Part shown: positions 15,561 through 35,369 of the stretch, piece by piece
Layout: the number at the start of each line of letters is the position of its first letter
How positions within the stretch are numbered: the stretch's first letter is position 1
Virus record (IMG/VR): IMGVR_UViG_3300046694_000136
Coordinates: 124,001-188,000 of that record
Length of the DNA: 64,000 nucleotides
Reading direction: 5' to 3' (one strand)
The notes under the pieces: generated by a model
What the model was told of the DNA's origin: nothing
What the model saw: the letters and a program-made list of their open reading frames with translations, nothing else
Database searches by the model: none
Translations under genes and position numbers: made by a program

Positions 15561-15615
15561 TGCAGTTTAATACCGCATTAACTTGCATAAATCACTTTCT
15601 CGACAGGAATGTATC

Positions 15616-17811
15616 ATGGACAAAGAAAATTTCAAGAAGGTTACGGCGAGTGTTGATAAGTCGCCGAACTACTTCCACAACACCCGCCAAGCTCTGACCA
15701 ACGGTAACCTTGCCTCGGTAAGCGGCAACGAAAGCTACACCGAATTCCAAAAGGCCCTGGACTCTGTTGACGGCTCCGAGTCGCTCAAAGTCAAGCAGAT
15801 GTTCACCGGCTTCAACCAGAACAACTTCGACGCGATCAAAAGCGCCTGGGGCAAGGACATCGTCGCACGCGCCAAGAGCGTTATCGATGGTTACGACGCC
15901 GACGGTCAGAAATTCGCCGCGGTCGCTGGTCAGGAAGGCTTCTCCCTCCAGAACTTTGGTGGCGACGAGCAATCGATCCGCGCAGCCAACCTGGTACTGA
16001 ACGCCCAGTCCCACCTGCAAACCAAAGGCGCTGATGCCCTGTACGCTCCGATTTCGATCGGCTACAAGGAAGAAGGCGTTGAAATGACCGTTCGTGCCGC
16101 CGGCCTGGGTACCTATACCTACGGTGCTACCGCGTTCCAATCCGCTTCCGATCTGCGTCCGGTCTTCGGCCTGCTGCGTTCCGGCGACATGTTCCAGGAA
16201 GAAGTCCTCGCTGTGTACCCTGTGTACCCTGCTGACGACGCTGCTGACGAACGCCGCTTCTTCGCTCCTGCTGCACTGTCCACTCCAGTCCCTGTCAAGT
16301 ACATGGCTGGCGATGCCTACGGCCGTCAGGAACACCTGACCCAGGACTTGGTTGTTCCGGTAACCATCCCGAACTTCCTGGCCCTGACCCAGACCCCTGG
16401 TCAACAGCCGTGGACCAACACCGACGAACTGGAGTCCAACTCCATCGCGGTCAAGCGCATCGGCGTGAAAGTCATGATCGGTTCGACCGAGAAGACCTTC
16501 TTCATCAACACTGCTTCGATGTCGAACAACACCTTCGGCGTCGGTGGTCAGGTACAGAGCTCCGACGAGCGTACTCTGAACCTGAAAATCTCCCAGTACC
16601 CAGGTTTCTCGGTACAGGACAAAGACGGCAACGAAATTGGCGAGACCATCTTCGCCGACTTCAAAGCCGCCGGTTACGAGCCACGCCTTCAGCTGCAACT
16701 GACTGGTACCTACCAGCGTCAGCGCGGTGACATCACCCTGCTCGCAGGTGCGGTGAACATCGCTGAGCTGTACGAGACCAGCACCAAGGTTGTCGTCAAG
16801 TACGGCAAAGCTTCGAGCCAGCAGCAAGGTCTGTTCAACACCCTGAAGTCGGGTACCGTGGTTTCCGCCCGTACCGGCCAGAACGTCAACAACACCAACC
16901 GTGGCAACTTCGGTTACCGCGTAGAAGTGTACGATGCCTACAAGCATCTGTCCGTTCAGCGCCGTTCGCCGATCTCGGTTCAGTACCCAGTGAGCGACAA
17001 GGACGTGTACCAGGAATCTCTGGACTTCGCCCTCAAGCAAATGTCGATCATCATCAACAACCAGTGCTCCAAGACTGCGTTCGTTGAAGCGCGTCGTCAC
17101 ACCGAGTACATCAAGCAGATCGACGGTTCCGCTGTTGTTGCCAACACCCAGGGCTCCGAAGTTCTGGCTGGTCAGCACTTCCTCACTCCAACCTGCGTTG
17201 ATCGCAAGCTGAAGCTGAGCGACGTGGTTTCGGCCAACGGTTCGTACGACGTCTGGAACGCAGTGTCCGCTGCGATCACCAACGAAATCGCCGACATCAT
17301 CGCTGCGCTGTACACCCGTTCGGGCCTGGCGGCTGTTGCCGAGTACACCACCGGTGATCTGAAAGGCAAATGGTCGGTTGTTGCTCACCAGAACATCAGC
17401 CGCTTCATCTTCCGTTCGGGCGACGCTCGTACTGTTGGTCCGGTTGATCAAGCCAACGTTGTTGAAACCAACTTCGACTCGGAAATCGGTTACGTCACCA
17501 TCGTACCGAAGAACGATTCGTCGTCGGAAGTCATCGACCCGCTGGCTGGTATCGGCGTCGTTGTGACCAAAGAGAACATTGTCGTACAAGGCAACGTGAC
17601 TCGTGGCAACAAAGACTTCGGCGTTGTTATGACGCTGCCGACCTACAAGCACTGGGGCCTGAACGTGGTCATCGGTCGTCTGTTCATCGAAGACGCCCAT
17701 CTGTTCCTGACCGACGACGGCTTGATCAACGACCTGGCTGTTAAAGCAGTTCGTCTGGCCAACGCCAACGAGATCGTGCTGACTCCGGTCGTTGACCCAA
17801 ACGCACCGTGA
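15616..17811 (+). CDS. Major capsid protein (phiKZ gp120-like)
   Basis: About 731 aa from ATG 15616 (AGGA RBS), strongest codon bias in the window, propeptide with VSGNES/VDGSES/VAGQEG sites, and helicase-gp119-MCP-x-RNAP synteny. Confidence 0.9.
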   Translation: MDKENFKKVTASVDKSPNYFHNTRQALTNGNLASVSGNESYTEFQKALDSVDGSESLKVKQMFTGFNQNNFDAIKSAWGKDIVARAKSVIDGYDADGQKFAAVAGQEGFSLQNFGGDEQSIRAANLVLNAQSHLQTKGADALYAPISIGYKEEGVEMTVRAAGLGTYTYGATAFQSASDLRPVFGLLRSGDMFQEEVLAVYPVYPADDAADERRFFAPAALSTPVPVKYMAGDAYGRQEHLTQDLVVPVTIPNFLALTQTPGQQPWTNTDELESNSIAVKRIGVKVMIGSTEKTFFINTASMSNNTFGVGGQVQSSDERTLNLKISQYPGFSVQDKDGNEIGETIFADFKAAGYEPRLQLQLTGTYQRQRGDITLLAGAVNIAELYETSTKVVVKYGKASSQQQGLFNTLKSGTVVSARTGQNVNNTNRGNFGYRVEVYDAYKHLSVQRRSPISVQYPVSDKDVYQESLDFALKQMSIIINNQCSKTAFVEARRHTEYIKQIDGSAVVANTQGSEVLAGQHFLTPTCVDRKLKLSDVVSANGSYDVWNAVSAAITNEIADIIAALYTRSGLAAVAEYTTGDLKGKWSVVAHQNISRFIFRSGDARTVGPVDQANVVETNFDSEIGYVTIVPKNDSSSEVIDPLAGIGVVVTKENIVVQGNVTRGNKDFGVVMTLPTYKHWGLNVVIGRLFIEDAHLFLTDDGLINDLAVKAVRLANANEIVLTPVVDPNAP

Positions 17812-17861
17812 TCCCGCCGACGTTCTACGGGCAACTGACGTTTCCCGAGAATAGATCGTAA
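17796..17861 (+). other. Predicted -1 programmed ribosomal frameshift site (C CCA AAC) and 19-codon MCP extension
   Basis: In-frame X XXY YYZ heptamer at 17796-17802, two codons before the stop. The -1 frame reads RTVIPPTFYGQLTFPENRS to TAA 17859-17861, before the terminator. Confidence 0.65.
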
Positions 17862-28031: not shown

Positions 28032-31000
28032 TTACGGTTTGAACGGCTGATATCCAGGATCGTTCTTACTAGGGTCCGTCCCATCTTTGTTGTCATCGTC
28101 CGCGCTAGCGTCCTTGTTAGCGTCGTCATCGTTAACAGGTGGTTCTTCGTCCTCTTCCTCTTCTTCCTCCTCACCGCCACCACCAGCTAGGGTGTCGTCG
28201 TCGACCAAAGCCGGATCATCAGTCAGAGCTGGATCTGCATCAGGATCAACAGGAGGGTTATCAATGCCATCACCGTTGGTCAGACTATCGTCAGGTTCTG
28301 CTTGGCCAGTGGTTTTATCCTTGGCTTGAAGCAGGTCTTGCTTAGACTTCTCGATATTCTTCCAATGCTTCTTGAGAACAGCCACGTCGGCCTTATCCAT
28401 ACCAACCATCATGGCAGCCAAGAACTCACCAGTGTTCTGGTGTTGCTGAACTACTTCGTTCACCAGAGACGCCAAGCCACCACCTTCACCACCCGCCAAT
28501 ACATCATCAAACGGCATTGGTAGGTTGTACTTGATGTAAGCCTGTCTGAGGAATACAGACTGGATCTGACCTTTCAGCTTAGCAAGGCTGTGCGGGTCAA
28601 TGTCTTCCTCAGGACTACCATCGTCGCCCTTAATGAAGCCCAGTAGTTTACCAACGTGAGACAACGTCCCGTTACCACCTGCCATGTCCATCCAGTTCTT
28701 AACCAGCTCATTAACCACCTGAAGGCTGTCTTTGATCTTGTTAGTGGTTTCAATACTGGTAGGAGTAGGAAGCTTGCAGATAACGTTACTGATGAAGTCA
28801 GCCAGAATTAGGTTGATCTGCTGTTGCTCGTTACCTTCCAATGTTTGACCACTGTCAGGTTTCCAAAGCTTCTTCTGTTCACGGATCTTGGCAATCAAGT
28901 CTTTCAGCAGCGGTGCGTTGACATACGCGTGCTTACGCTGGAAGTCAGCGAGGAACCCACCCAACTCAGCCTGATAGCTAACCACCTGGTTCAACAACAT
29001 CTGGTGCTCGGCCAAAGCCTCGATCTGGAAGTTGTTCTGATCGTCAGAGATATCCAGCCAGCTCTTTTGAAGTTGGAGGTAACTGGCGATCTTGTTCAAC
29101 AGTTCATTACGACTGTTTTGGTCAACCCCAGGGAAGTTGTTACGATCCATGTGGTCAATCTGAACATCGTGACCCGGGAAGTACGGGTTCTCACCCGGAT
29201 CTACCTTAACGGTCAACGACGCTTCCCGTAGGGAGTCAATCATCTGCGGAACAGACAACTGAGTCATCATCAGGATGTTGTGAACAGTCGGGTTAGCTTC
29301 AAAGAACGTGTTACGCGCGTTAGCGATGTCAGCCATCGGTTCAGGAGCGTTAGCGTTCAGACGAACAGTCATCATGGAGTGAGGGGTTGCCTTCTCCAAG
29401 TTAGACAGAGTGTCAGCCAAATCAAACATTGCCAGTCGAGTGATATGTGACTTCGCCATGTTCACCAAGGATTGACCGATGCCCAAGCGGTTGAAGTTCA
29501 ACGCCATGTAGGTGAGAGCCTCTCCAGGGATGTACAGACAACGAACGCCTTGACCACGGAACATGCGCTGCAAGAAGATCTTGTTGACCTCCTCGTCGAT
29601 CTCAATGCTGATGTTGTCACCATTACCACCCAACACCGACGCACTGAATGCACGGATAAGGTTAGCTTTAGAGACTTCAGCAAACTCACGCATGTCGAAA
29701 TCACATTCCTTACCTTCCTGCACCTTACGCAAGTTCTGGATAAGGCTGTTCATGCTACCGTTCTTAGCTGGAGCGCCTGACTTCTCCTTGTTAGCACCGA
29801 TCGACTGGTAGAACTCGAAGTCGTTGGTGTTCTTCAGGAAACTGCCATCTTCAGTATCCAGCAACGCGATGTAGTCAGGAGCAGTACGTCCATTACCGCC
29901 GTTGAAGTGGATAGGGATCAAACACTCACTCGGCAAGTGGAACGTCAGACCACGACCGTACGGAGCAGTATCCAGAGCACCGCTAGGCTTAACGTACTGA
30001 ATGAACTGCGACGCAATATTCCGGCTACGGAACATCTGGGCGCTGACTTGCTCGATCTGACCTTCGCTCAAGTTCTGAGTCTTAGGTGAGGACGCGGCAG
30101 TCTTACCCTTAGTGACGTTACCCTTCTGTCCACCGGCTGTGGTGTCTTTCTTTTCAGGTTTCTTCGGGGAGGTGTCTGCTTCTTCAGGTTTGTCTTTGAA
30201 AGACTCACCAATCAACAGATCCAAGCTCTCGAAACCAGAGACTTGCTTAACCCGTTCATCACGACGACCAGCACTGATCTTCTGAAGGAACAGAGCAGAA
30301 GGGTTATCCGTGAAAGTGATGTTGATCAGCTTCTCAGGGTCTTCTGCGTCACTGAACAGACGGAACTCGTCACCAGCATAGCTCGGACCTTTACCGAAGA
30401 TGCTTTCAATACCCGAAACCTGCTGATGGGACTCATGAGGGTTCTTAATGAAAGCGCCCTTGTTCTTCAGCAGAACTTTCTTATCGGTAGTGATTGTGAA
30501 CTCTTTGCTGAACTCTTCCTGAGCCTGACCGATGAAACTCTCAACACCAGCTACTCCTGCTTCCCGCAGTTGACTACCGTTGATCAGGTAATCCAGACCC
30601 GGGCGGCTCAAGTTAAACAGTGCGTAACTCCCCGTATTAATGAGAAGATCGCTCACTATTTTCTTCAAATCCCCCTCGATCTTATAGCCGTTAGTGTAAT
30701 AGGCGTCCCAGATGGCCACCAATTCCGTATGCAATTTTGCACTTTTGTATGGTGACGACTGGGTGTCATAACTGAGGATTTTGTCCTGCCGACCATTGGG
30801 GTACAGCAGCATTGTCTGCCAGATGGTTTCGGCTTTCCCGATGTACGGGGTGATGGCCCTGAGGTCAGTCGCGGCGTTGATGTTGTTGCTGATGATGCTA
30901 CTCAGCTTCTCCAACTTGAACTGACTGATCCCTTTATCGGATTTGCCGGTAAGCTCATCCCGTTCAGGAGTACGAGCGTTCTTAGGAACAGCGCGAGCCA

Positions 31001-31103
31001 GAGTGGAAGCCAACACGGGGTTTACAGTTTTCAGATCTGCCCGGATCCTGGACAGGTCAATGTTGCTATTGCCGATCGTCAGATCTTTTGTATGTCTATT
31101 CAC
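28032..31103 (-). CDS. Probable portal protein (phiKZ gp129-like) with a long acidic C-terminal tail
   Basis: About 1020 aa; GTG 31103 with GAAGGGG RBS (TTG 31127 is an alternative). Has VAGVES/VSGIES/VSGFES processing sites, so it is head-located. Divergent from a gp128-like gene. Assignment from recall. Confidence 0.6.
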   Translation of the reverse strand: MNRHTKDLTIGNSNIDLSRIRADLKTVNPVLASTLARAVPKNARTPERDELTGKSDKGISQFKLEKLSSIISNNINAATDLRAITPYIGKAETIWQTMLLYPNGRQDKILSYDTQSSPYKSAKLHTELVAIWDAYYTNGYKIEGDLKKIVSDLLINTGSYALFNLSRPGLDYLINGSQLREAGVAGVESFIGQAQEEFSKEFTITTDKKVLLKNKGAFIKNPHESHQQVSGIESIFGKGPSYAGDEFRLFSDAEDPEKLINITFTDNPSALFLQKISAGRRDERVKQVSGFESLDLLIGESFKDKPEEADTSPKKPEKKDTTAGGQKGNVTKGKTAASSPKTQNLSEGQIEQVSAQMFRSRNIASQFIQYVKPSGALDTAPYGRGLTFHLPSECLIPIHFNGGNGRTAPDYIALLDTEDGSFLKNTNDFEFYQSIGANKEKSGAPAKNGSMNSLIQNLRKVQEGKECDFDMREFAEVSKANLIRAFSASVLGGNGDNISIEIDEEVNKIFLQRMFRGQGVRCLYIPGEALTYMALNFNRLGIGQSLVNMAKSHITRLAMFDLADTLSNLEKATPHSMMTVRLNANAPEPMADIANARNTFFEANPTVHNILMMTQLSVPQMIDSLREASLTVKVDPGENPYFPGHDVQIDHMDRNNFPGVDQNSRNELLNKIASYLQLQKSWLDISDDQNNFQIEALAEHQMLLNQVVSYQAELGGFLADFQRKHAYVNAPLLKDLIAKIREQKKLWKPDSGQTLEGNEQQQINLILADFISNVICKLPTPTSIETTNKIKDSLQVVNELVKNWMDMAGGNGTLSHVGKLLGFIKGDDGSPEEDIDPHSLAKLKGQIQSVFLRQAYIKYNLPMPFDDVLAGGEGGGLASLVNEVVQQHQNTGEFLAAMMVGMDKADVAVLKKHWKNIEKSKQDLLQAKDKTTGQAEPDDSLTNGDGIDNPPVDPDADPALTDDPALVDDDTLAGGGGEEEEEEEDEEPPVNDDDANKDASADDDNKDGTDPSKNDPGYQPFKP

Positions 31104-31129
31104 GACATTAAACCCCTTCGAGTCCAATT

Positions 31130-33406
31130 ATGGAAAATATTGAATTTGATGAATACGTAAGGGATACTCTAAGTTTAGTCCGGACCTTGGTTGTCAAGAT
31201 CGAGGCGGTAGCCCTTAGGGAAAACAGTGTCCTGGAAGCTGCTGGTTTTTTCGTCACTAATGACAAGAAGACCTGGCGGTACTATATGAACTTGAACGGG
31301 GACTATCACCCAACTGATGTGCCGATGTGGATTAACTCCATTGACACGGGTGAGGACATCCTCTTTGATAAAGCAAACATGGCTTTTCACATTGCCACGT
31401 TTCGGGAATACTCCAAAGGCGGGTACTGGTTTAAACGGATCAGCGACGCCTATCCAGGCCAAGTGGAACTGATCAAAGGGATCTTGAAACCGATCCCATA
31501 CGAAACAACCATACCGGCTGAGAACTATAAAATCCTGAGCTACAATAAAAACCTAGTACTGTGGAACGAGGATCACCTGATTCCCCACCTCCAGCAGTTC
31601 ATCTACGGTATTGTTCCTCAGTTGTTCAACCACGAATACATCTACACCGATAACCTGATGTTGCCGGTTACGGGGGTAATGACCCTCTACGAAGCAATCC
31701 TCATGGAAATCGGGACCGTTCGTCATGAGTCCATCGGGAGCCGTCATGCTCACGATTTCTACATCTGGGCTCGTGTGGATTCGTACGGTGAGTTCTCTAA
31801 GTACAAAGCCAGTCTGACCAAGACTCAGATCATGTGGATGTATGACAACATCTCATGGCTCGATAACAACCCAGGCGCGCAGTACGCTTTCAGCTTTATG
31901 CTGAAGAACTTGTTGTCCGATGCAGATATCCCGCTGGCTGAGTTCAGCATGGTGCAAAACACCAAGACTCAGCTGGTCGATCTGACACCTACCCCGCTGT
32001 ACCGTAAGCTCAACCTTAACCTGCAAGATAAGTACGGTCTGGAACCGTCCTATATCACCACGCAGCAGATGATCCTCAAAGAACAGGTGTTGGCTAAGGA
32101 TAACTACGACCAGTCTGCCATATGGAACGACCACGCCCTCAGGAAGGCTACTCAGAGTTTGCACTCAGAGCTTCCGACCAAGGTGCTGGAATCCAAAATG
32201 ATGGACTACACCAACCGGCACATCAACACGAAGATGTCGGTGACGTTCAACAACTGGATCTATCTGGCTGGTAAAGGTTACTACCAAGGCAAGATCTTGG
32301 TTCGTGACCCTAAGACTGGTAAAGACGTTCGTTTGGCAGTAGGGGATGCTTACCACATCTGGCGTCACTTGACCAACATTGCAGGCGGTCGGGAACAGAC
32401 GTACATCTGTGGCGCGTATTACCAAAACGTTATGAAAGCAGTTCCTCCGACATTGGATGAATTGATTCAGGTGGGTGGTAAGTATTTCATTCCGGTCTAC
32501 ATGGCCTTTGATATTCGTGCGTTGTGGGTTCCTCGTCAGATCTTCGTGTCTCCTGAGTTCTTGATGGAGCAGTCTGACGAAATCTATAACGTCATGTGGA
32601 AACACACAAAGCTGTACAGTCAGTTCTATGATCTCAACAAGCGCGCCAGAGTGCGTAACACCACGGAGTTGATGTACGAGTCAGGGTTTGTTGAACTGAC
32701 GACTGCAACCACCTACGAGGAGCTCCTAGACCGTTATGAGATGGATGTCAGCGACCATTCGCCAGAGGAAGCCCAATATTTCGCTTGGGAGATCTTCAAA
32801 CGAGTAACAGGTTGGGATACCAGCTCTAATCCGTCACTGCGTATTCGTCAAAACGCTTTGATTGATATCATGATGCAGTTGTCCTCTTACACGATCCAAG
32901 TCGTGAAGGAAATGGATGACGGTCAGGACATCACGGAACTCCCTAACGAGATGTTCGTAGGGGATCCCCGCTGGACGGGTCCGGGTAATGAATCGGATGC
33001 AGACTTCTCCAATGTGGGTATTGGGGAACCAACTCACATGGACACGACGTATGAGATGGATTACACCATCGCCTTACCACTGCCCGATGAGTTCAAGACC
33101 AACGCTGAAGCGGATATGCTTATTGAGATCCCTACAGTTGAAGGTATTGTTCCGGTCGACCTAGAACCAGACTTGATGTATTACGCTGTCCGCATTCCAG
33201 ACACGTCGTATATCAGACGTTTGCCAGACCCTATCCCAGATCTCCCTGAAACGGATTATGGGCGTTTGGTATGGCCTAAGCGGGAAGCCGGGAAGACTAT
33301 TCCGGAAACGGACTACGGTCGTCTACAGTGGCCGTCTCAGGAACCGACTGCCATTATCCCTGACACTGATTACGGTCGCCTAGCGTGGCCTGATGAGACA
33401 CCATGA
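31130..33406 (+). CDS. Virion structural protein (phiKZ gp128-like) with three C-terminal repeats
   Basis: 'TWRYYMNLNGDYH' N-terminal signature recalled from this family; 758 aa. Confidence 0.7.
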   Translation: MENIEFDEYVRDTLSLVRTLVVKIEAVALRENSVLEAAGFFVTNDKKTWRYYMNLNGDYHPTDVPMWINSIDTGEDILFDKANMAFHIATFREYSKGGYWFKRISDAYPGQVELIKGILKPIPYETTIPAENYKILSYNKNLVLWNEDHLIPHLQQFIYGIVPQLFNHEYIYTDNLMLPVTGVMTLYEAILMEIGTVRHESIGSRHAHDFYIWARVDSYGEFSKYKASLTKTQIMWMYDNISWLDNNPGAQYAFSFMLKNLLSDADIPLAEFSMVQNTKTQLVDLTPTPLYRKLNLNLQDKYGLEPSYITTQQMILKEQVLAKDNYDQSAIWNDHALRKATQSLHSELPTKVLESKMMDYTNRHINTKMSVTFNNWIYLAGKGYYQGKILVRDPKTGKDVRLAVGDAYHIWRHLTNIAGGREQTYICGAYYQNVMKAVPPTLDELIQVGGKYFIPVYMAFDIRALWVPRQIFVSPEFLMEQSDEIYNVMWKHTKLYSQFYDLNKRARVRNTTELMYESGFVELTTATTYEELLDRYEMDVSDHSPEEAQYFAWEIFKRVTGWDTSSNPSLRIRQNALIDIMMQLSSYTIQVVKEMDDGQDITELPNEMFVGDPRWTGPGNESDADFSNVGIGEPTHMDTTYEMDYTIALPLPDEFKTNAEADMLIEIPTVEGIVPVDLEPDLMYYAVRIPDTSYIRRLPDPIPDLPETDYGRLVWPKREAGKTIPETDYGRLQWPSQEPTAIIPDTDYGRLAWPDETP
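33242..33391 (+). repeat. 3 x 57-nt-period coding repeat, [IL]P[ED]TDYGRLxWP
   Basis: Units start at 33242, 33299 and 33356. The DNA has diverged synonymously while the peptide is conserved. Confidence 0.9.
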
Positions 33407-33804
33407 TGAGCAAAGCACTCGATTGGGTTAGACGTGATTACTGTAGGGTAAACAACATGCCGTTGAACCCGGCGTTGGTAGTCGTTCAATATGGAAGGGA
33501 TTCCAACGACGACTTCCAGTTTGGTGTTAGTGGACCCGGTTATCCAATGACTGGGTTTACCCTGCCACGTATCAGTCTTAAACCTTATACCAGCTTCGTC
33601 CCTTTAACTTTGGATCGAGAGTGGAAAGATAAACCCGACCAGCTCACCAAAGAAACCCTGTGCCGTTGGTTCAACAGCAAAACGGGGTTGGGATTAATCC
33701 CGGATGACATCGGTACCATCCTGACTAATCAGGAGCGAGTTACCATTGTTAGTTCGGTAAATTCTATGCGTTTTAAACACACCTTTTCCATGCGATTTAA
33801 ATAA
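33403..33804 (+). CDS. Small virion protein
   Basis: Coupled to the upstream gene; 133 aa. Confidence 0.65.
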   Translation: MMSKALDWVRRDYCRVNNMPLNPALVVVQYGRDSNDDFQFGVSGPGYPMTGFTLPRISLKPYTSFVPLTLDREWKDKPDQLTKETLCRWFNSKTGLGLIPDDIGTILTNQERVTIVSSVNSMRFKHTFSMRFK

Positions 33805-33816
33805 GGAATCTTTGTT

Positions 33817-34764
33817 ATGGGTCTCAGTGCCAACGATACAGCAGACTTGAACCGTTCCGAGATCCCTGCTCAGGCGGTCGCGAACACCTCGATCGGCTAT
33901 ACTCTCAACAAGTGCATCTCCACCGGTCAAGCCTTTACCGTTCCTCGCTGGACCACCTTGAATGAAAACTACAAGGTGTTGGCTGAAGAAAGTCTGGGTG
34001 AGAAGAACAGTCGTGACTTCTACCTCAAATACTTCGGCGTGGGTGTGCGTGGTTCCAACTGTGTAGGTCAAGACAGCCGTGGTGTTTCCAAATACCAGGT
34101 TAACCAACACCAGCCGATCGATGCCAACCTCTTCACGGCGATTCCGTTCATTGCTCGTCCGGAAACCGAAGACTTGGACAGCTTCAACCGCGCCAAGTAC
34201 CGGATGCGTACCACTGAAGAACGCAACGGCATCAACTACGTGTTCTATTGGCTGAAGCTGATCGACTTCTCCCGTTACAACCCACACGAAGTGGAAGTGT
34301 CTCGTGACCCGATCACCGGTGAAGAGAAGACCAACCCGTATACCCACACTGAAGACAACCTGAAGAACCCTCAACCGGTTCCGCTGACCAGCGAAGGGAC
34401 TGTACCTATCAGCGACGTCTACGTGAACAGTTCGGCTATCTTGGACTGCACACTGTACACCGCTGATTTGCGTGAGATGTCACTGGCATGCAAAATCTAT
34501 TACAACGACGCCAGTTACGCTTCGATCAACGAAGTGGGTGTGGCTTACGGTATCGACGTTGAACATCGTGGCGGTATCGGTGGTTCGGGTTCTATCCAGT
34601 ACACCGAAGTGGCCAGCGCTATCTTCGCTCACTACATCAGTGAACGTGATGGTCGTAACGCCCTGACCAACACCCGCATCAACGCCGCTCTCGACCACGG
34701 TGCCAGTGCTCCAATGCTGATCCATACCGTAGCGAACTCCTCGGCGATGGGTCAAGGTAACTAA
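33817..34764 (+). CDS. Conserved virion (baseplate/tail) protein
   Basis: AAGGA RBS; 'YFGVG...HQPIDANLF..IPFIARP' block typical of phiKZ-family structural proteins (recall). Confidence 0.65.
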   Translation: MGLSANDTADLNRSEIPAQAVANTSIGYTLNKCISTGQAFTVPRWTTLNENYKVLAEESLGEKNSRDFYLKYFGVGVRGSNCVGQDSRGVSKYQVNQHQPIDANLFTAIPFIARPETEDLDSFNRAKYRMRTTEERNGINYVFYWLKLIDFSRYNPHEVEVSRDPITGEEKTNPYTHTEDNLKNPQPVPLTSEGTVPISDVYVNSSAILDCTLYTADLREMSLACKIYYNDASYASINEVGVAYGIDVEHRGGIGGSGSIQYTEVASAIFAHYISERDGRNALTNTRINAALDHGASAPMLIHTVANSSAMGQGN

Positions 34765-34766
34765 GC

Positions 34767-35369
34767 ATGGAGATACCAGCCATCCTTAAAGGAGAACCGC
34801 ACCTCCCGTTGACTGCAATGATGACCTTATCCGAAGCACTGCCTTTGGCTAACGCGTTCTATCAGACCAGCCTCAGCATGGAGCAGTTCTCCGAGGCCCA
34901 GGCCTTCGAGGGCCCTAGTGGTCCTTTGGTATTGGAAGCCCGCTCTATCGAGACCGGGGAAGTACTGATCCGTTTCGTTAATCAGAACATTAATGTACCG
35001 CAAGTAGTGCAGCGTGTTGCACTGAGTAACCCCCTCGCTCACGATAGCCAGTGGCTGGGTCCTCTCGTTGTCGTTGACAACAGCGCTGAGCTTGCGTTCC
35101 TGGACGAATTAGGTTCAGGCAACATCTACTCCACCCTTTGCGACAATACCCTCGCCTGGAAGCTTGCAACGCTCCTGAACGAGTACAACGCAGTAGGGCA
35201 TTGGCGAGCCAGTACTTTCGCTGAATACAGTGCAGCTGGCTTTGAGCTGGTTTACAAGGGACCGTCCACTGATGCACCTGAGGAATACCTAGTCGGGGAT
35301 TCTGATATGGTGGCTATCCTCAGGTTCCACCACGGTATCAATAAAGGAATGCTTTGTTTGAAATCTTAA
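34767..35369 (+). CDS. Hypothetical/virion protein
   Basis: Lies in the operon; 200 aa. Confidence 0.65.
   Translation: MEIPAILKGEPHLPLTAMMTLSEALPLANAFYQTSLSMEQFSEAQAFEGPSGPLVLEARSIETGEVLIRFVNQNINVPQVVQRVALSNPLAHDSQWLGPLVVVDNSAELAFLDELGSGNIYSTLCDNTLAWKLATLLNEYNAVGHWRASTFAEYSAAGFELVYKGPSTDAPEEYLVGDSDMVAILRFHHGINKGMLCLKS

Follow-up and report, generated by a model that had tools for sequence, protein, structure and literature searches.

The window, which denotes here the whole 64,000-nt stretch analysed (positions 124,001 to 188,000 of IMG/VR record IMGVR_UViG_3300046694_000136), carries a baseplate wedge gene with three tandem peptide motifs at its 3' end, several neighbouring genes and, further upstream, the major capsid gene. 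The features are as follows:

15583..17811 (+), major capsid protein gene, 0 frame
17796..17802 (+), candidate -1 slippery heptamer C_CCA_AAC, inside the 13-nt stretch between the last -1-frame stop and the capsid stop codon
17796..17861 (+), -1-frame extension PKRTV-IPPTFYGQLTFPE-NRS-stop, in which the tag itself spans 17811-17849
28032..31127 (-), divergently transcribed portal gene, homolog of phiKZ gp129
31130..33406 (+), gene for the baseplate wedge protein (758 aa), homolog of phiKZ gp128 and EL gp104
32822..33241 (+), clade-specific C-terminal region before the tags (aa 565-704), predicted unstructured in isolation, ending with the conserved element YAVRIxDxSYIRxLP
33242..33277 (+), tag copy 1 (aa 705-716), LPETDYGRLVWP
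33278..33298 (+), variable linker 1, KREAGKT
33299..33334 (+), tag copy 2 (aa 724-735), IPETDYGRLQWP
33335..33355 (+), variable linker 2, SQEPTAI
33356..33391 (+), tag copy 3 (aa 743-754), IPDTDYGRLAWP, followed by four residues (DETP) and the stop codon
33403..33804 (+), 133-aa ORF whose start overlaps the wedge stop (ATGATGA), syntenic with EL gp105 and RisingSun gp90, a candidate partner
33817..34764 (+), DUF7208 protein, homolog of phiKZ gp139, a candidate partner
34767..35369 (+), 200-aa EL gp107-like protein, restricted to the tag-bearing clade apart from a weak Miami hit, a candidate partner

Three copies of a peptide motif in a predicted disordered tail

To assign the protein that carries the repeats, we compared it with profile and structure databases. 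It matched phrog_3222 over aa 1-625 (E 1e-200), phiKZ gp128 at 28% identity over aa 3-595 (E 2e-69) and PDB chain 9xqs_C (PHIKZ128, E 4e-67), and is therefore the homolog of phiKZ gp128, a role in the baseplate wedge being taken from the phiKZ cryo-EM atlas (PMC13250141); it is not a head protein. The gene neighbourhood is also conserved, with a divergent portal gene (phrog_3004; syntenic with phiKZ gp129 and EL gp103, portal identity from PMC13250141) and a downstream gene of the gp139/gp127 family (Pfam PF23838, E 3e-93; blastp to phiKZ gp139, E 6e-27; PDB 9xpg_A PHIKZ139), dimer A of gp139 being in contact with gp128 in phiKZ (PMC13250141). A gp87-like gene is present at 115418-118348 of the whole genome (G000; 23% identity over 948 aa to phiKZ 84998-87781); in phiKZ one gp128 and two gp87 occupy the T4 gp7/(gp6)2 position, and a corresponding assembly here would be by analogy. 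At the nucleotide level, megablast of the region against the phage collection found no match, and only protein-level searches found relatives.

The observation made in an earlier note, that three 12-residue motifs recur at an exact 19-residue period at 33242-33391, was confirmed. The spacing is exactly 57 nt, and a repeat search reported three 36-nt copies at 69-78% identity. Within the 12 motif codons, each pair of copies differs at 5-6 codons synonymously and at only 2-3 non-synonymously, whereas the 7-codon linkers share 6-8 of 21 bases and no residues; similarly, among six three-repeat orthologs, tag columns are 86% identical and linker columns 49%. In a six-frame scan of the whole 234.5-kb genome, P-x-[TS]-[DN]-Y-x-x-L occurs only in this tail (three times) and at the C-end of one other protein, and a near-variant with F at the [DN] position lies in the -1 frame behind the capsid gene. 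This is far beyond chance, and it is the peptide, not the DNA, that is conserved.

Next, we examined whether the repeats fold as an intramolecular domain, an outcome that had been named beforehand as one that would count against the earlier note's reading. AlphaFold2 with a 30-sequence alignment gave a mainly helical model over aa 1-565 with most blocks at pLDDT 80-92, consistent, without superposition on 9xqs, with a helix-rich two-domain fold, but left residues 565-758 below 50 with no secondary structure (pLDDT 32-43 over aa 570-758, no strands). The YAVRIxDxSYIRxLP element that precedes the tags is conserved even in tag-less orthologs. Pfam searches of the wedge protein and its neighbours found nothing for the tail (no family at E≤0.01), and a profile of the tail against PDB sequences gave only chance hits to DNA ligase (E 0.24).

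A tag shared by three kinds of carrier

The motif was found to be a clade-wide tag, [ILV]-P-x-T-[DNY]-Y-G-x-L, with three kinds of carrier, the first of which is the wedge tail. Among relatives the tail has 0, 1, 2, 3 or about 4 copies with spacings of 15-21 or 34-36 residues (15, 16, 17, 18, 20 and 21 in the shorter range), and neither three copies nor a period of 19 is conserved outside the subclade formed by this phage and EL. Copy number appears to change by units, as relatives of 739-741 aa lack about one unit (17-19 residues; exactly 19 in the two 739-aa proteins), whereas EL has 3.5 copies and RisingSun one.

The second carrier is the EL gp147-like family, which the earlier note had not identified. 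EL gp147 ends ...IPETDYGRLEF..., and 27 metagenomic gp147-like proteins all end with the tag; in a 22-sequence alignment Y and L are invariant and I, P and T are at least 90% conserved. The tag is the low-confidence tail (pLDDT about 50) of an otherwise folded a/b domain in the predicted model of the gp147-like protein. Foldseek of this model against the PDB gave no significant match, the best relevant hit being a phiKZ outer-baseplate chain at TM 0.28-0.34, and a sequence profile against the PDB gave only chance ACP hits. RisingSun gp197, gp205 and gp206 and a FishSpeaker ORF also carry the tag.

The third carrier is a -1-frame extension of the major capsid gene (phrog_3231 major head protein, E 2e-159; 58% identity to the EL capsid protein), which encodes the tag behind the C_CCA_AAC heptamer. 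The same arrangement is found in EL, RisingSun, FishSpeaker and about 35 IMG/VR relatives: all relatives with at least 48% capsid identity encode the tag in the -1 frame, whereas those at 40% or below do not. The same heptamer, or A_AAA_AAC, G_GGA_AAC or A_AAC_CCG, is present in about 31 of 35 related loci, the X_XXA_AAC-type heptamers varying while staying slippery, and four loci have only ACC_CCG_TAA. A hairpin of only modest stability, a possible stimulatory structure, starts about 5 nt after the heptamer (-23 kcal/mol, z=-1.9; 8 of 200 shuffles fold as well). Our literature searches for EL gp147 and for capsid frameshifting in Chimalliviridae found nothing relevant, and in the absence of protein-level evidence the frameshifted capsid form remains a prediction from sequence.

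Positions not used to define the motif agree across the three carriers, position -5 being I/L/V in every instance counted and positions +5/+6 being aromatic-or-P followed by P/E. The wedge and capsid tags also co-occur: all 21 contigs that carry both loci and have the capsid tag belong to one clade, and 19 of them have at least one wedge tag, while all 4 contigs without the capsid tag have none. This co-occurrence is essentially that of one clade and therefore one evolutionary event, and the two relatives that keep the capsid tag without a wedge tag (loci L126 and L127) indicate that the wedge array is dispensable. The tag is absent from the Miami, OBP and phiKZ genomes and from pTD1-like capsid and wedge loci. 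Tag flavours can differ within one genome (TYYG on wedge and capsid, TDYG on the gp147-like protein), which could mean that there is more than one reader.

Candidate partners of the tag

To search for a partner, we used phyletic profiling, which yielded three candidates with the right pattern, namely a 171-aa virion structural protein (G000:121451-121966), the 200-aa protein at window 34767-35369 and the N-domain of the gp147-like family itself; the profiling could not discriminate among them, all three being present in five further clade genomes. A complex prediction of the tail with these three candidates scored ipSAE 0.00, a value that the method itself does not regard as evidence either way, and ESM Atlas look-ups of the 171-aa and 200-aa proteins gave uninformative scores of 0.49-0.66. 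The EL Kelch-like gp153 was considered as a peptide reader and rejected because it has no homolog in this genome, and the array of ~300-aa paralogs (RisingSun gp196-204) was down-weighted because EL nearly lacks it. The phage chaperonin was likewise down-weighted, as Miami and OBP also have it but lack tags, and its adjacency to the gp147-like gene is not clade-wide.

A docking peptide as the most likely function

We consider it somewhat more likely than not that the three motifs are tandem copies of a roughly 13-residue docking peptide, [ILV]-P-x-T-[DNY]-Y-G-x-L-x-(aromatic)-P-E, at the end of a predicted disordered tail of the wedge protein, and that each copy independently binds one copy of a common, as yet unidentified partner. 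In this view, the array would set valency or avidity at the six baseplate wedges, while frameshift frequency would set how many capsid subunits, as a minor form of the capsid protein, display the same hook. Our data establish the motif and its selective conservation, its disorder (as predicted), its three carriers, the frameshift signal and the clade-wide co-occurrence, whereas it is by inference that we regard the tag as a binding site, the frameshift product as actually made and the partner as the same for all three carriers; it is also not obvious why one partner should be wanted on both capsid and baseplate. The interpretation in the earlier note was thus borne out in part: the gp128-like identity of the carrier, selection on the peptide, the lack of an intramolecular fold and the link to the capsid tag are supported, while the proposal of three binding sites for a trimeric or three-copy partner is not, and the baseplate wedge role of the carrier had been missed.

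Among described systems, phiKZ gp128 is homologous over about 600 N-terminal residues and its C-terminal part contacts the outer-baseplate protein gp139 (PMC13250141), but neither it nor the rest of the phiKZ genome has the tag, the repeat-bearing tail beyond about aa 600 being specific to the EL/RisingSun-like clade. A further precedent in the same virus family is the C-terminus of gp26, which inserts into the gp157 ring of the phiKZ outer baseplate (PMC13250141), although the proteins are different, there is no sequence similarity to the tag, and no repetition or sharing across capsid and baseplate is reported. In T7, minor capsid protein 10B is made from gene 10A/10B by -1 frameshifting at the end of the capsid gene; here, too, a slippery site lies a few codons before the capsid stop and a short -1 ORF would extend a minority of subunits, but the extension carries a motif that recurs on baseplate and accessory proteins of the same phage, which suggests a defined binding function, and no such shared motif is known for T7 10B. 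Ig-like accessory domains appear on capsid, tail or baseplate proteins of one phage, sometimes through programmed frameshifting (reportedly described by Fraser et al. 2006), whereas the add-on here is a predicted unstructured 13-residue peptide that would recruit something rather than act itself. Short linear motif arrays share the conserved islands in variable, disordered sequence, the variable copy number and spacing, and the occurrence in unrelated proteins, although the reader domain that defines a true motif class has not been found.

A more far-reaching possibility, which we regard as tentative, is a virus-encoded 'Velcro' system in which a single reader protein, or the N-domain of the gp147-like family polymerizing head-to-tail through its own tag, is hung on the capsid, the six baseplate wedges and accessory proteins, the dose being set by frameshift frequency on the capsid and by repeat number on the wedges. 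This would be a non-covalent, tunable way of decorating a jumbo-phage virion with one accessory module, and it is not known to have been described for any phage.

Alternative explanations

Two alternatives appear unlikely but survive best. The tag may be a sequon at which a phage or host enzyme modifies the invariant Thr or Tyr, for example by O-glycosylation, on several surface-exposed virion proteins, as is reported for C-terminal extensions of mycobacteriophage capsid and tail-tube proteins; Thr at -2 and Tyr at 0 are nearly invariant in all three carriers, the tags sit in exposed tails predicted to be disordered, and the same short motif on unrelated virion proteins is what a sequon looks like. 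However, none of the clade-restricted genes found by phyletic profiling looks like a transferase or kinase in Pfam or PHROGs, no modification data exist, and the hydrophobic positions (I/L at -5, L at +3, aromatic at +5) are as conserved as Thr and Tyr, which is more typical of a binding peptide. Equally, the tag may recruit the GroEL-like phage chaperonin, or another assembly or localization factor, to large structural proteins during morphogenesis without a role in the finished virion. In this genome and in EL the gp147-like gene lies immediately downstream of the chaperonin gene, all tagged proteins are structural or virion-associated, and the tags are flexible C-terminal peptides; in contrast, the two genes are 18 kb apart in RisingSun and 10 kb apart in FishSpeaker, Miami and OBP have the chaperonin but no tag, only a frameshifted minority of capsid protein would carry the signal, and several copies per wedge are not needed for a folding signal.

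A symmetry-matched adaptor along the lines of the earlier note, in which exactly three equally spaced sites grip a trimeric fibre or three copies of a partner, is less likely still: three copies at an exact 19-aa period occur here and in EL, and monomer-to-trimer adaptors such as T4 gp7-gp10 are common in baseplates, but close relatives have two copies, RisingSun one and others 0-4, the spacing varies as described above, and the capsid and gp147-like carriers have a single copy. Direct weak adhesion of the tag to a host surface structure, the role reportedly proposed by Fraser et al. 2006 for Ig-like domains that phages append by frameshifting, is very doubtful, for although the distribution over several virion surface sites, including a frameshift-added capsid extension, resembles that of such domains, a 13-residue unstructured peptide is an unlikely carbohydrate or protein receptor binder on its own, and conservation across phages of Pseudomonas, Erwinia and Shewanella argues for a phage-encoded rather than a host reader. 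Finally, folding of the three units into a small beta-solenoid, or a foldon-like or cell-wall-binding-repeat-like domain, is disfavoured, as the roughly 19-20-aa period with aromatic and glycine residues only superficially recalls choline-binding/YG repeats and the T4 foldon, whereas no Pfam family (such as CW_binding_1) or PDB sequence matched, no structure was predicted, copy number falls to 0 or 1 with variable spacing, and the motif occurs as a single copy on other proteins.

Implications for EL/RisingSun-like jumbo phages

We found no description of this shared tag in the literature searched. The analysis adds a conserved candidate frameshift site to capsid-gene annotation in this clade and corrects the identity of the carrier from head protein to baseplate wedge. 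The idea also gives a concrete and cheap handle for finding unknown virion components, in the form of a 13-residue peptide for pull-downs and a slip site that can be silenced synonymously, and EL is a cultured phage with an established host, so that every prediction is directly testable. If the tag is a docking peptide, it reveals an assembly principle in an entire clade of nucleus-forming jumbo phages (Pseudomonas EL, Erwinia RisingSun/Joad, Shewanella FishSpeaker and dozens of uncultured relatives), in which one short peptide, placed on capsid, baseplate and accessory proteins, would recruit a common component whose dose would be controlled by ribosomal frameshifting at one site and by repeat number at another.

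Three peptide repeats close the C-terminal tail of a baseplate wedge homolog

The window is part of a 234,503-bp single-contig genome with terminal repeats (designated G000), which belongs to a phiKZ-like (Chimalliviridae) jumbo phage; its nearest cultured relatives are Pseudomonas phage EL and its kin, at about 57% protein identity and with no nucleotide-level match. The features at the repeat-bearing locus are as follows.

28032-31127, minus strand: portal gene, divergent from the wedge gene
31130-33406, plus strand: wedge protein ORF, 758 aa
33242-33277, plus strand: tag copy 1, LPETDYGRLVWP
33299-33334, plus strand: tag copy 2, IPETDYGRLQWP
33356-33391, plus strand: tag copy 3, IPDTDYGRLAWP, followed by DETP and the stop
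33403-33409: overlap (ATGATGA) of the wedge stop with the start of a 133-aa ORF
34767-35369: clade-restricted 200-aa protein

The three copies lie exactly 57 nt apart. Each pair differs at 5-6 of 12 codons synonymously and at only 2-3 non-synonymously, whereas the 7-residue linkers are unrelated; across six orthologs with three repeats, tag columns are 86% identical and linker columns 49%. The observation of the earlier note, three 12-residue motifs at an exact 19-residue period whose codons differ while the residues are kept, was confirmed in every detail.

To identify the carrier, we compared its sequence with protein families and solved structures. Residues 1-625 match phrog_3222 (E 1e-200), and the protein is the homolog of phiKZ gp128, matching the solved chain 9xqs_C; the PDB entries 11lx and 36za also contain wedge and gp139-like homologs, from another jumbo phage, at similarity about equal to phiKZ. 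The 2026 cryo-EM atlas of phiKZ (PMC13250141) shows that gp128 is not a head protein but the baseplate wedge subunit, in which one gp128 and two gp87 form a three-helix-bundle core, and that its outer part touches gp139 dimer A of the outer baseplate. The gene neighbourhood fits this picture: the portal gene is divergent, the start of the 133-aa ORF overlaps the wedge stop, which suggests translational coupling, and this ORF is followed by a DUF7208 protein that is the phiKZ gp139 homolog and then by the 200-aa protein, while a gp87-like gene lies elsewhere in the genome. The portal homolog ends in a long acidic low-complexity tail (28032-28200, minus strand), consisting of a run of E and then D/N/K-rich sequence. 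AlphaFold2 with a 30-sequence alignment folded residues 1-565 as a helical body but left residues 565-758 below pLDDT 50 with no secondary structure; although models of such tails are low-confidence by nature, the repeats are therefore predicted to be islands in a disordered tail rather than a folded domain.

The motif recurs across the clade on wedge and gp147-like proteins

We next examined wedge orthologs for the motif. Six metagenomic proteins of 758 aa have three copies, and three proteins of 739-741 aa have two, about one unit (17-19 residues) fewer. EL gp104 has 3.5 copies at the same 19-aa period and RisingSun gp89 has one; in IMG/VR relatives the tail carries 0-4 copies with spacings of 15-21 or 34-36 aa, often in a T-Y-Y-G flavour. 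The FishSpeaker, Miami, OBP and phiKZ wedges lack the tag, and the FishSpeaker wedge tail (L003:3301-4188, locus L003 being from FishSpeaker) has instead, at the same position, three copies of a different ~21-residue repeat (VSKSLxGLxSxEALIDxxYxD), while its capsid gene keeps a tag-like -1 extension.

A second carrier is EL gp147 (209 aa, phrog_18233), which ends ...IPETDYGRLEF.... Its homolog in this genome (G000:209612-210220, outside the window, just after the phage GroEL-like chaperonin gene, as in EL) ends ...IPPTNYKQLAHPED..., and all 27 full-length metagenomic homologs end with the tag. In the 22-sequence family alignment, Y and L are invariant and I, P and T are at least 90% conserved, which is better than most of the folded body. 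RisingSun has three tagged paralogs (gp197, gp205 and gp206), FishSpeaker has one, and five further clade genomes each have one tagged ortholog. AlphaFold2 folded the body of this ~200-aa protein as an a/b domain and left the tag flexible; the N-domain of the family is shared with larger 'virion structural' proteins. A 66-aa open frame near the genome end (G000:52-171, minus strand) resembles the N-terminus of the gp147-like protein (35% identity over 40 aa) and is possibly a remnant inside the terminal repeat.

Other short C-terminal motifs were also seen among these proteins. A sister paralog family of the gp147-like proteins (EL 163313-163906, minus strand; RisingSun gp201, L058:14500-16164 on RisingSun locus L058; and loci L271, L273 and L275) ends in a different conserved motif, roughly [FYW]-[ND]-G-x-[FYH]-x-[YH]-[DN]-G-[TS]-[LIV]-x-[YL]-stop, which suggests a second tag system. 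The tails of RisingSun gp89 (L002:3346-3795 on RisingSun locus L002) and gp201 share a further short motif, DLGDI[TA][ST]KQ, hinting that these C-terminal tails are mosaics of several shared peptides.

A candidate -1 frameshift site places the tag behind the capsid gene

The features at the end of the capsid gene are as follows.

15583-17811, plus strand: major capsid ORF (phrog_3231), ending ...V-D-P-N-A-P-stop
17796-17861, plus strand: 21-codon -1 ORF reading PKRTV-IPPTFYGQLTFPE-NRS-stop
15592-17700, minus strand: 702-aa open frame entirely antisense to the capsid gene

The -1 frame is open from 17796, and its 13-nt overlap with the capsid ORF begins with the canonical heptamer C_CCA_AAC, four codons before the capsid stop, which we regard as a conserved candidate site of programmed -1 frameshifting; the putative RNA stimulator is weak. 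The same arrangement occurs in EL, RisingSun and FishSpeaker, and in every one of about 35 IMG/VR capsid relatives with at least 48% identity, in which the heptamer is C_CCA_AAC, A_AAA_AAC, G_GGA_AAC or A_AAC_CCG, with four loci having only ACC_CCG_TAA; the site thus changes while staying slippery. Relatives at 40% identity or below (pTD1-like, OBP-like) have neither the heptamer nor the tag. The long antisense frame, like similar frames shadowing other genes in the window, is most likely a non-coding shadow ORF.

In five complete genomes of the T-Y-Y-G subclade, the exact T-Y-Y-G-x-L pattern occurs only in the wedge tail and behind the capsid gene, whereas the backwards-read control pattern gave 0-1 hits. 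Furthermore, positions that were not used to define the tag agree among the three carriers, with position -5 being I/L/V in every instance counted and positions +5/+6 being aromatic-or-P followed by P/E.

All 21 contigs that hold both loci with the capsid tag fall in one clade, and 19 of them have at least one wedge tag; all 4 contigs without the capsid tag have no wedge tag. Because this is one clade, the co-occurrence counts as roughly one evolutionary origin and not as 21 independent events. The two tag-less wedges (IMG/VR loci L126 and L127) show that the wedge array is dispensable, whereas the capsid and gp147-like tags are universal among the clade members examined.

Candidate partners and alternative explanations

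To search for candidate partners, we carried out phyletic profiling of this genome with EL, RisingSun and FishSpeaker against Miami, OBP and phiKZ, which left few clade-restricted genes: a 171-aa virion structural protein (phrog_14066), the 200-aa protein at 34767-35369, an internal-head-protein paralog and two unknowns. The gp147-like family fell just outside the filter, since its FishSpeaker homolog was missed by tblastn and seen only by blastp, but it is likewise absent from Miami, OBP and phiKZ. The 171-aa, 200-aa and gp147-like proteins are all present in five more clade genomes; a four-chain complex prediction of the tail with these three scored 0.00, a score that for this method is no evidence either way. 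The genome also carries an array of ~300-460-aa paralogs (G000:222417-230199, minus strand, outside the window) that are related to RisingSun gp196-204 and to part of phiKZ gp83, and which EL largely lacks.

Alternative explanations were considered. The tag could be a modification sequon acting on the invariant Thr or Tyr, but no matching enzyme was found among the clade-restricted genes. It could be a transient chaperonin or assembly signal, in line with the gp147-like gene following the chaperonin gene here and in EL; however, this order is not found in RisingSun or FishSpeaker, and the chaperonin also exists in tag-less phages. The proposal of the earlier note that the three copies are sites for a trimeric or three-copy partner is not supported, because neither three copies nor a 19-aa period is conserved. 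Direct host adhesion is unlikely for a peptide conserved across phages of three host genera, and an intramolecular fold found no support from Pfam, PDB or AlphaFold2.

A shared peptide as a putative docking tag

Literature searches found no description of the tag, of EL gp147 or of capsid frameshifting in this family; the RisingSun paper reports crude-lysate peptides for gp206 and gp207 but does not mention the motif. The closest known ideas are capsid extension by -1 frameshifting, as in T7 10B, and frameshift-appended Ig-like domains, from which the present case differs in that a peptide tag is shared between capsid, baseplate wedge and accessory proteins.

Taken together, the data fit a short linear docking motif, that is, a conserved peptide in a predicted disordered tail with free copy number and spacing and with recurrence on unrelated proteins. 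The motif, its conservation, its three carriers, the slippery site and the co-occurrence within the clade are established by our sequence comparisons, and the disorder of the tail by prediction, whereas binding, a common partner and production of the frameshifted capsid form are inferred from sequence alone, without protein-level evidence. The phiKZ baseplate provides precedents for wedge-to-outer-baseplate contacts and for C-terminal peptide docking (PMC13250141). We therefore read the triple motif as a multivalent array of putative binding sites for a common partner; the capsid version of the tag would be dosed by frameshifting.
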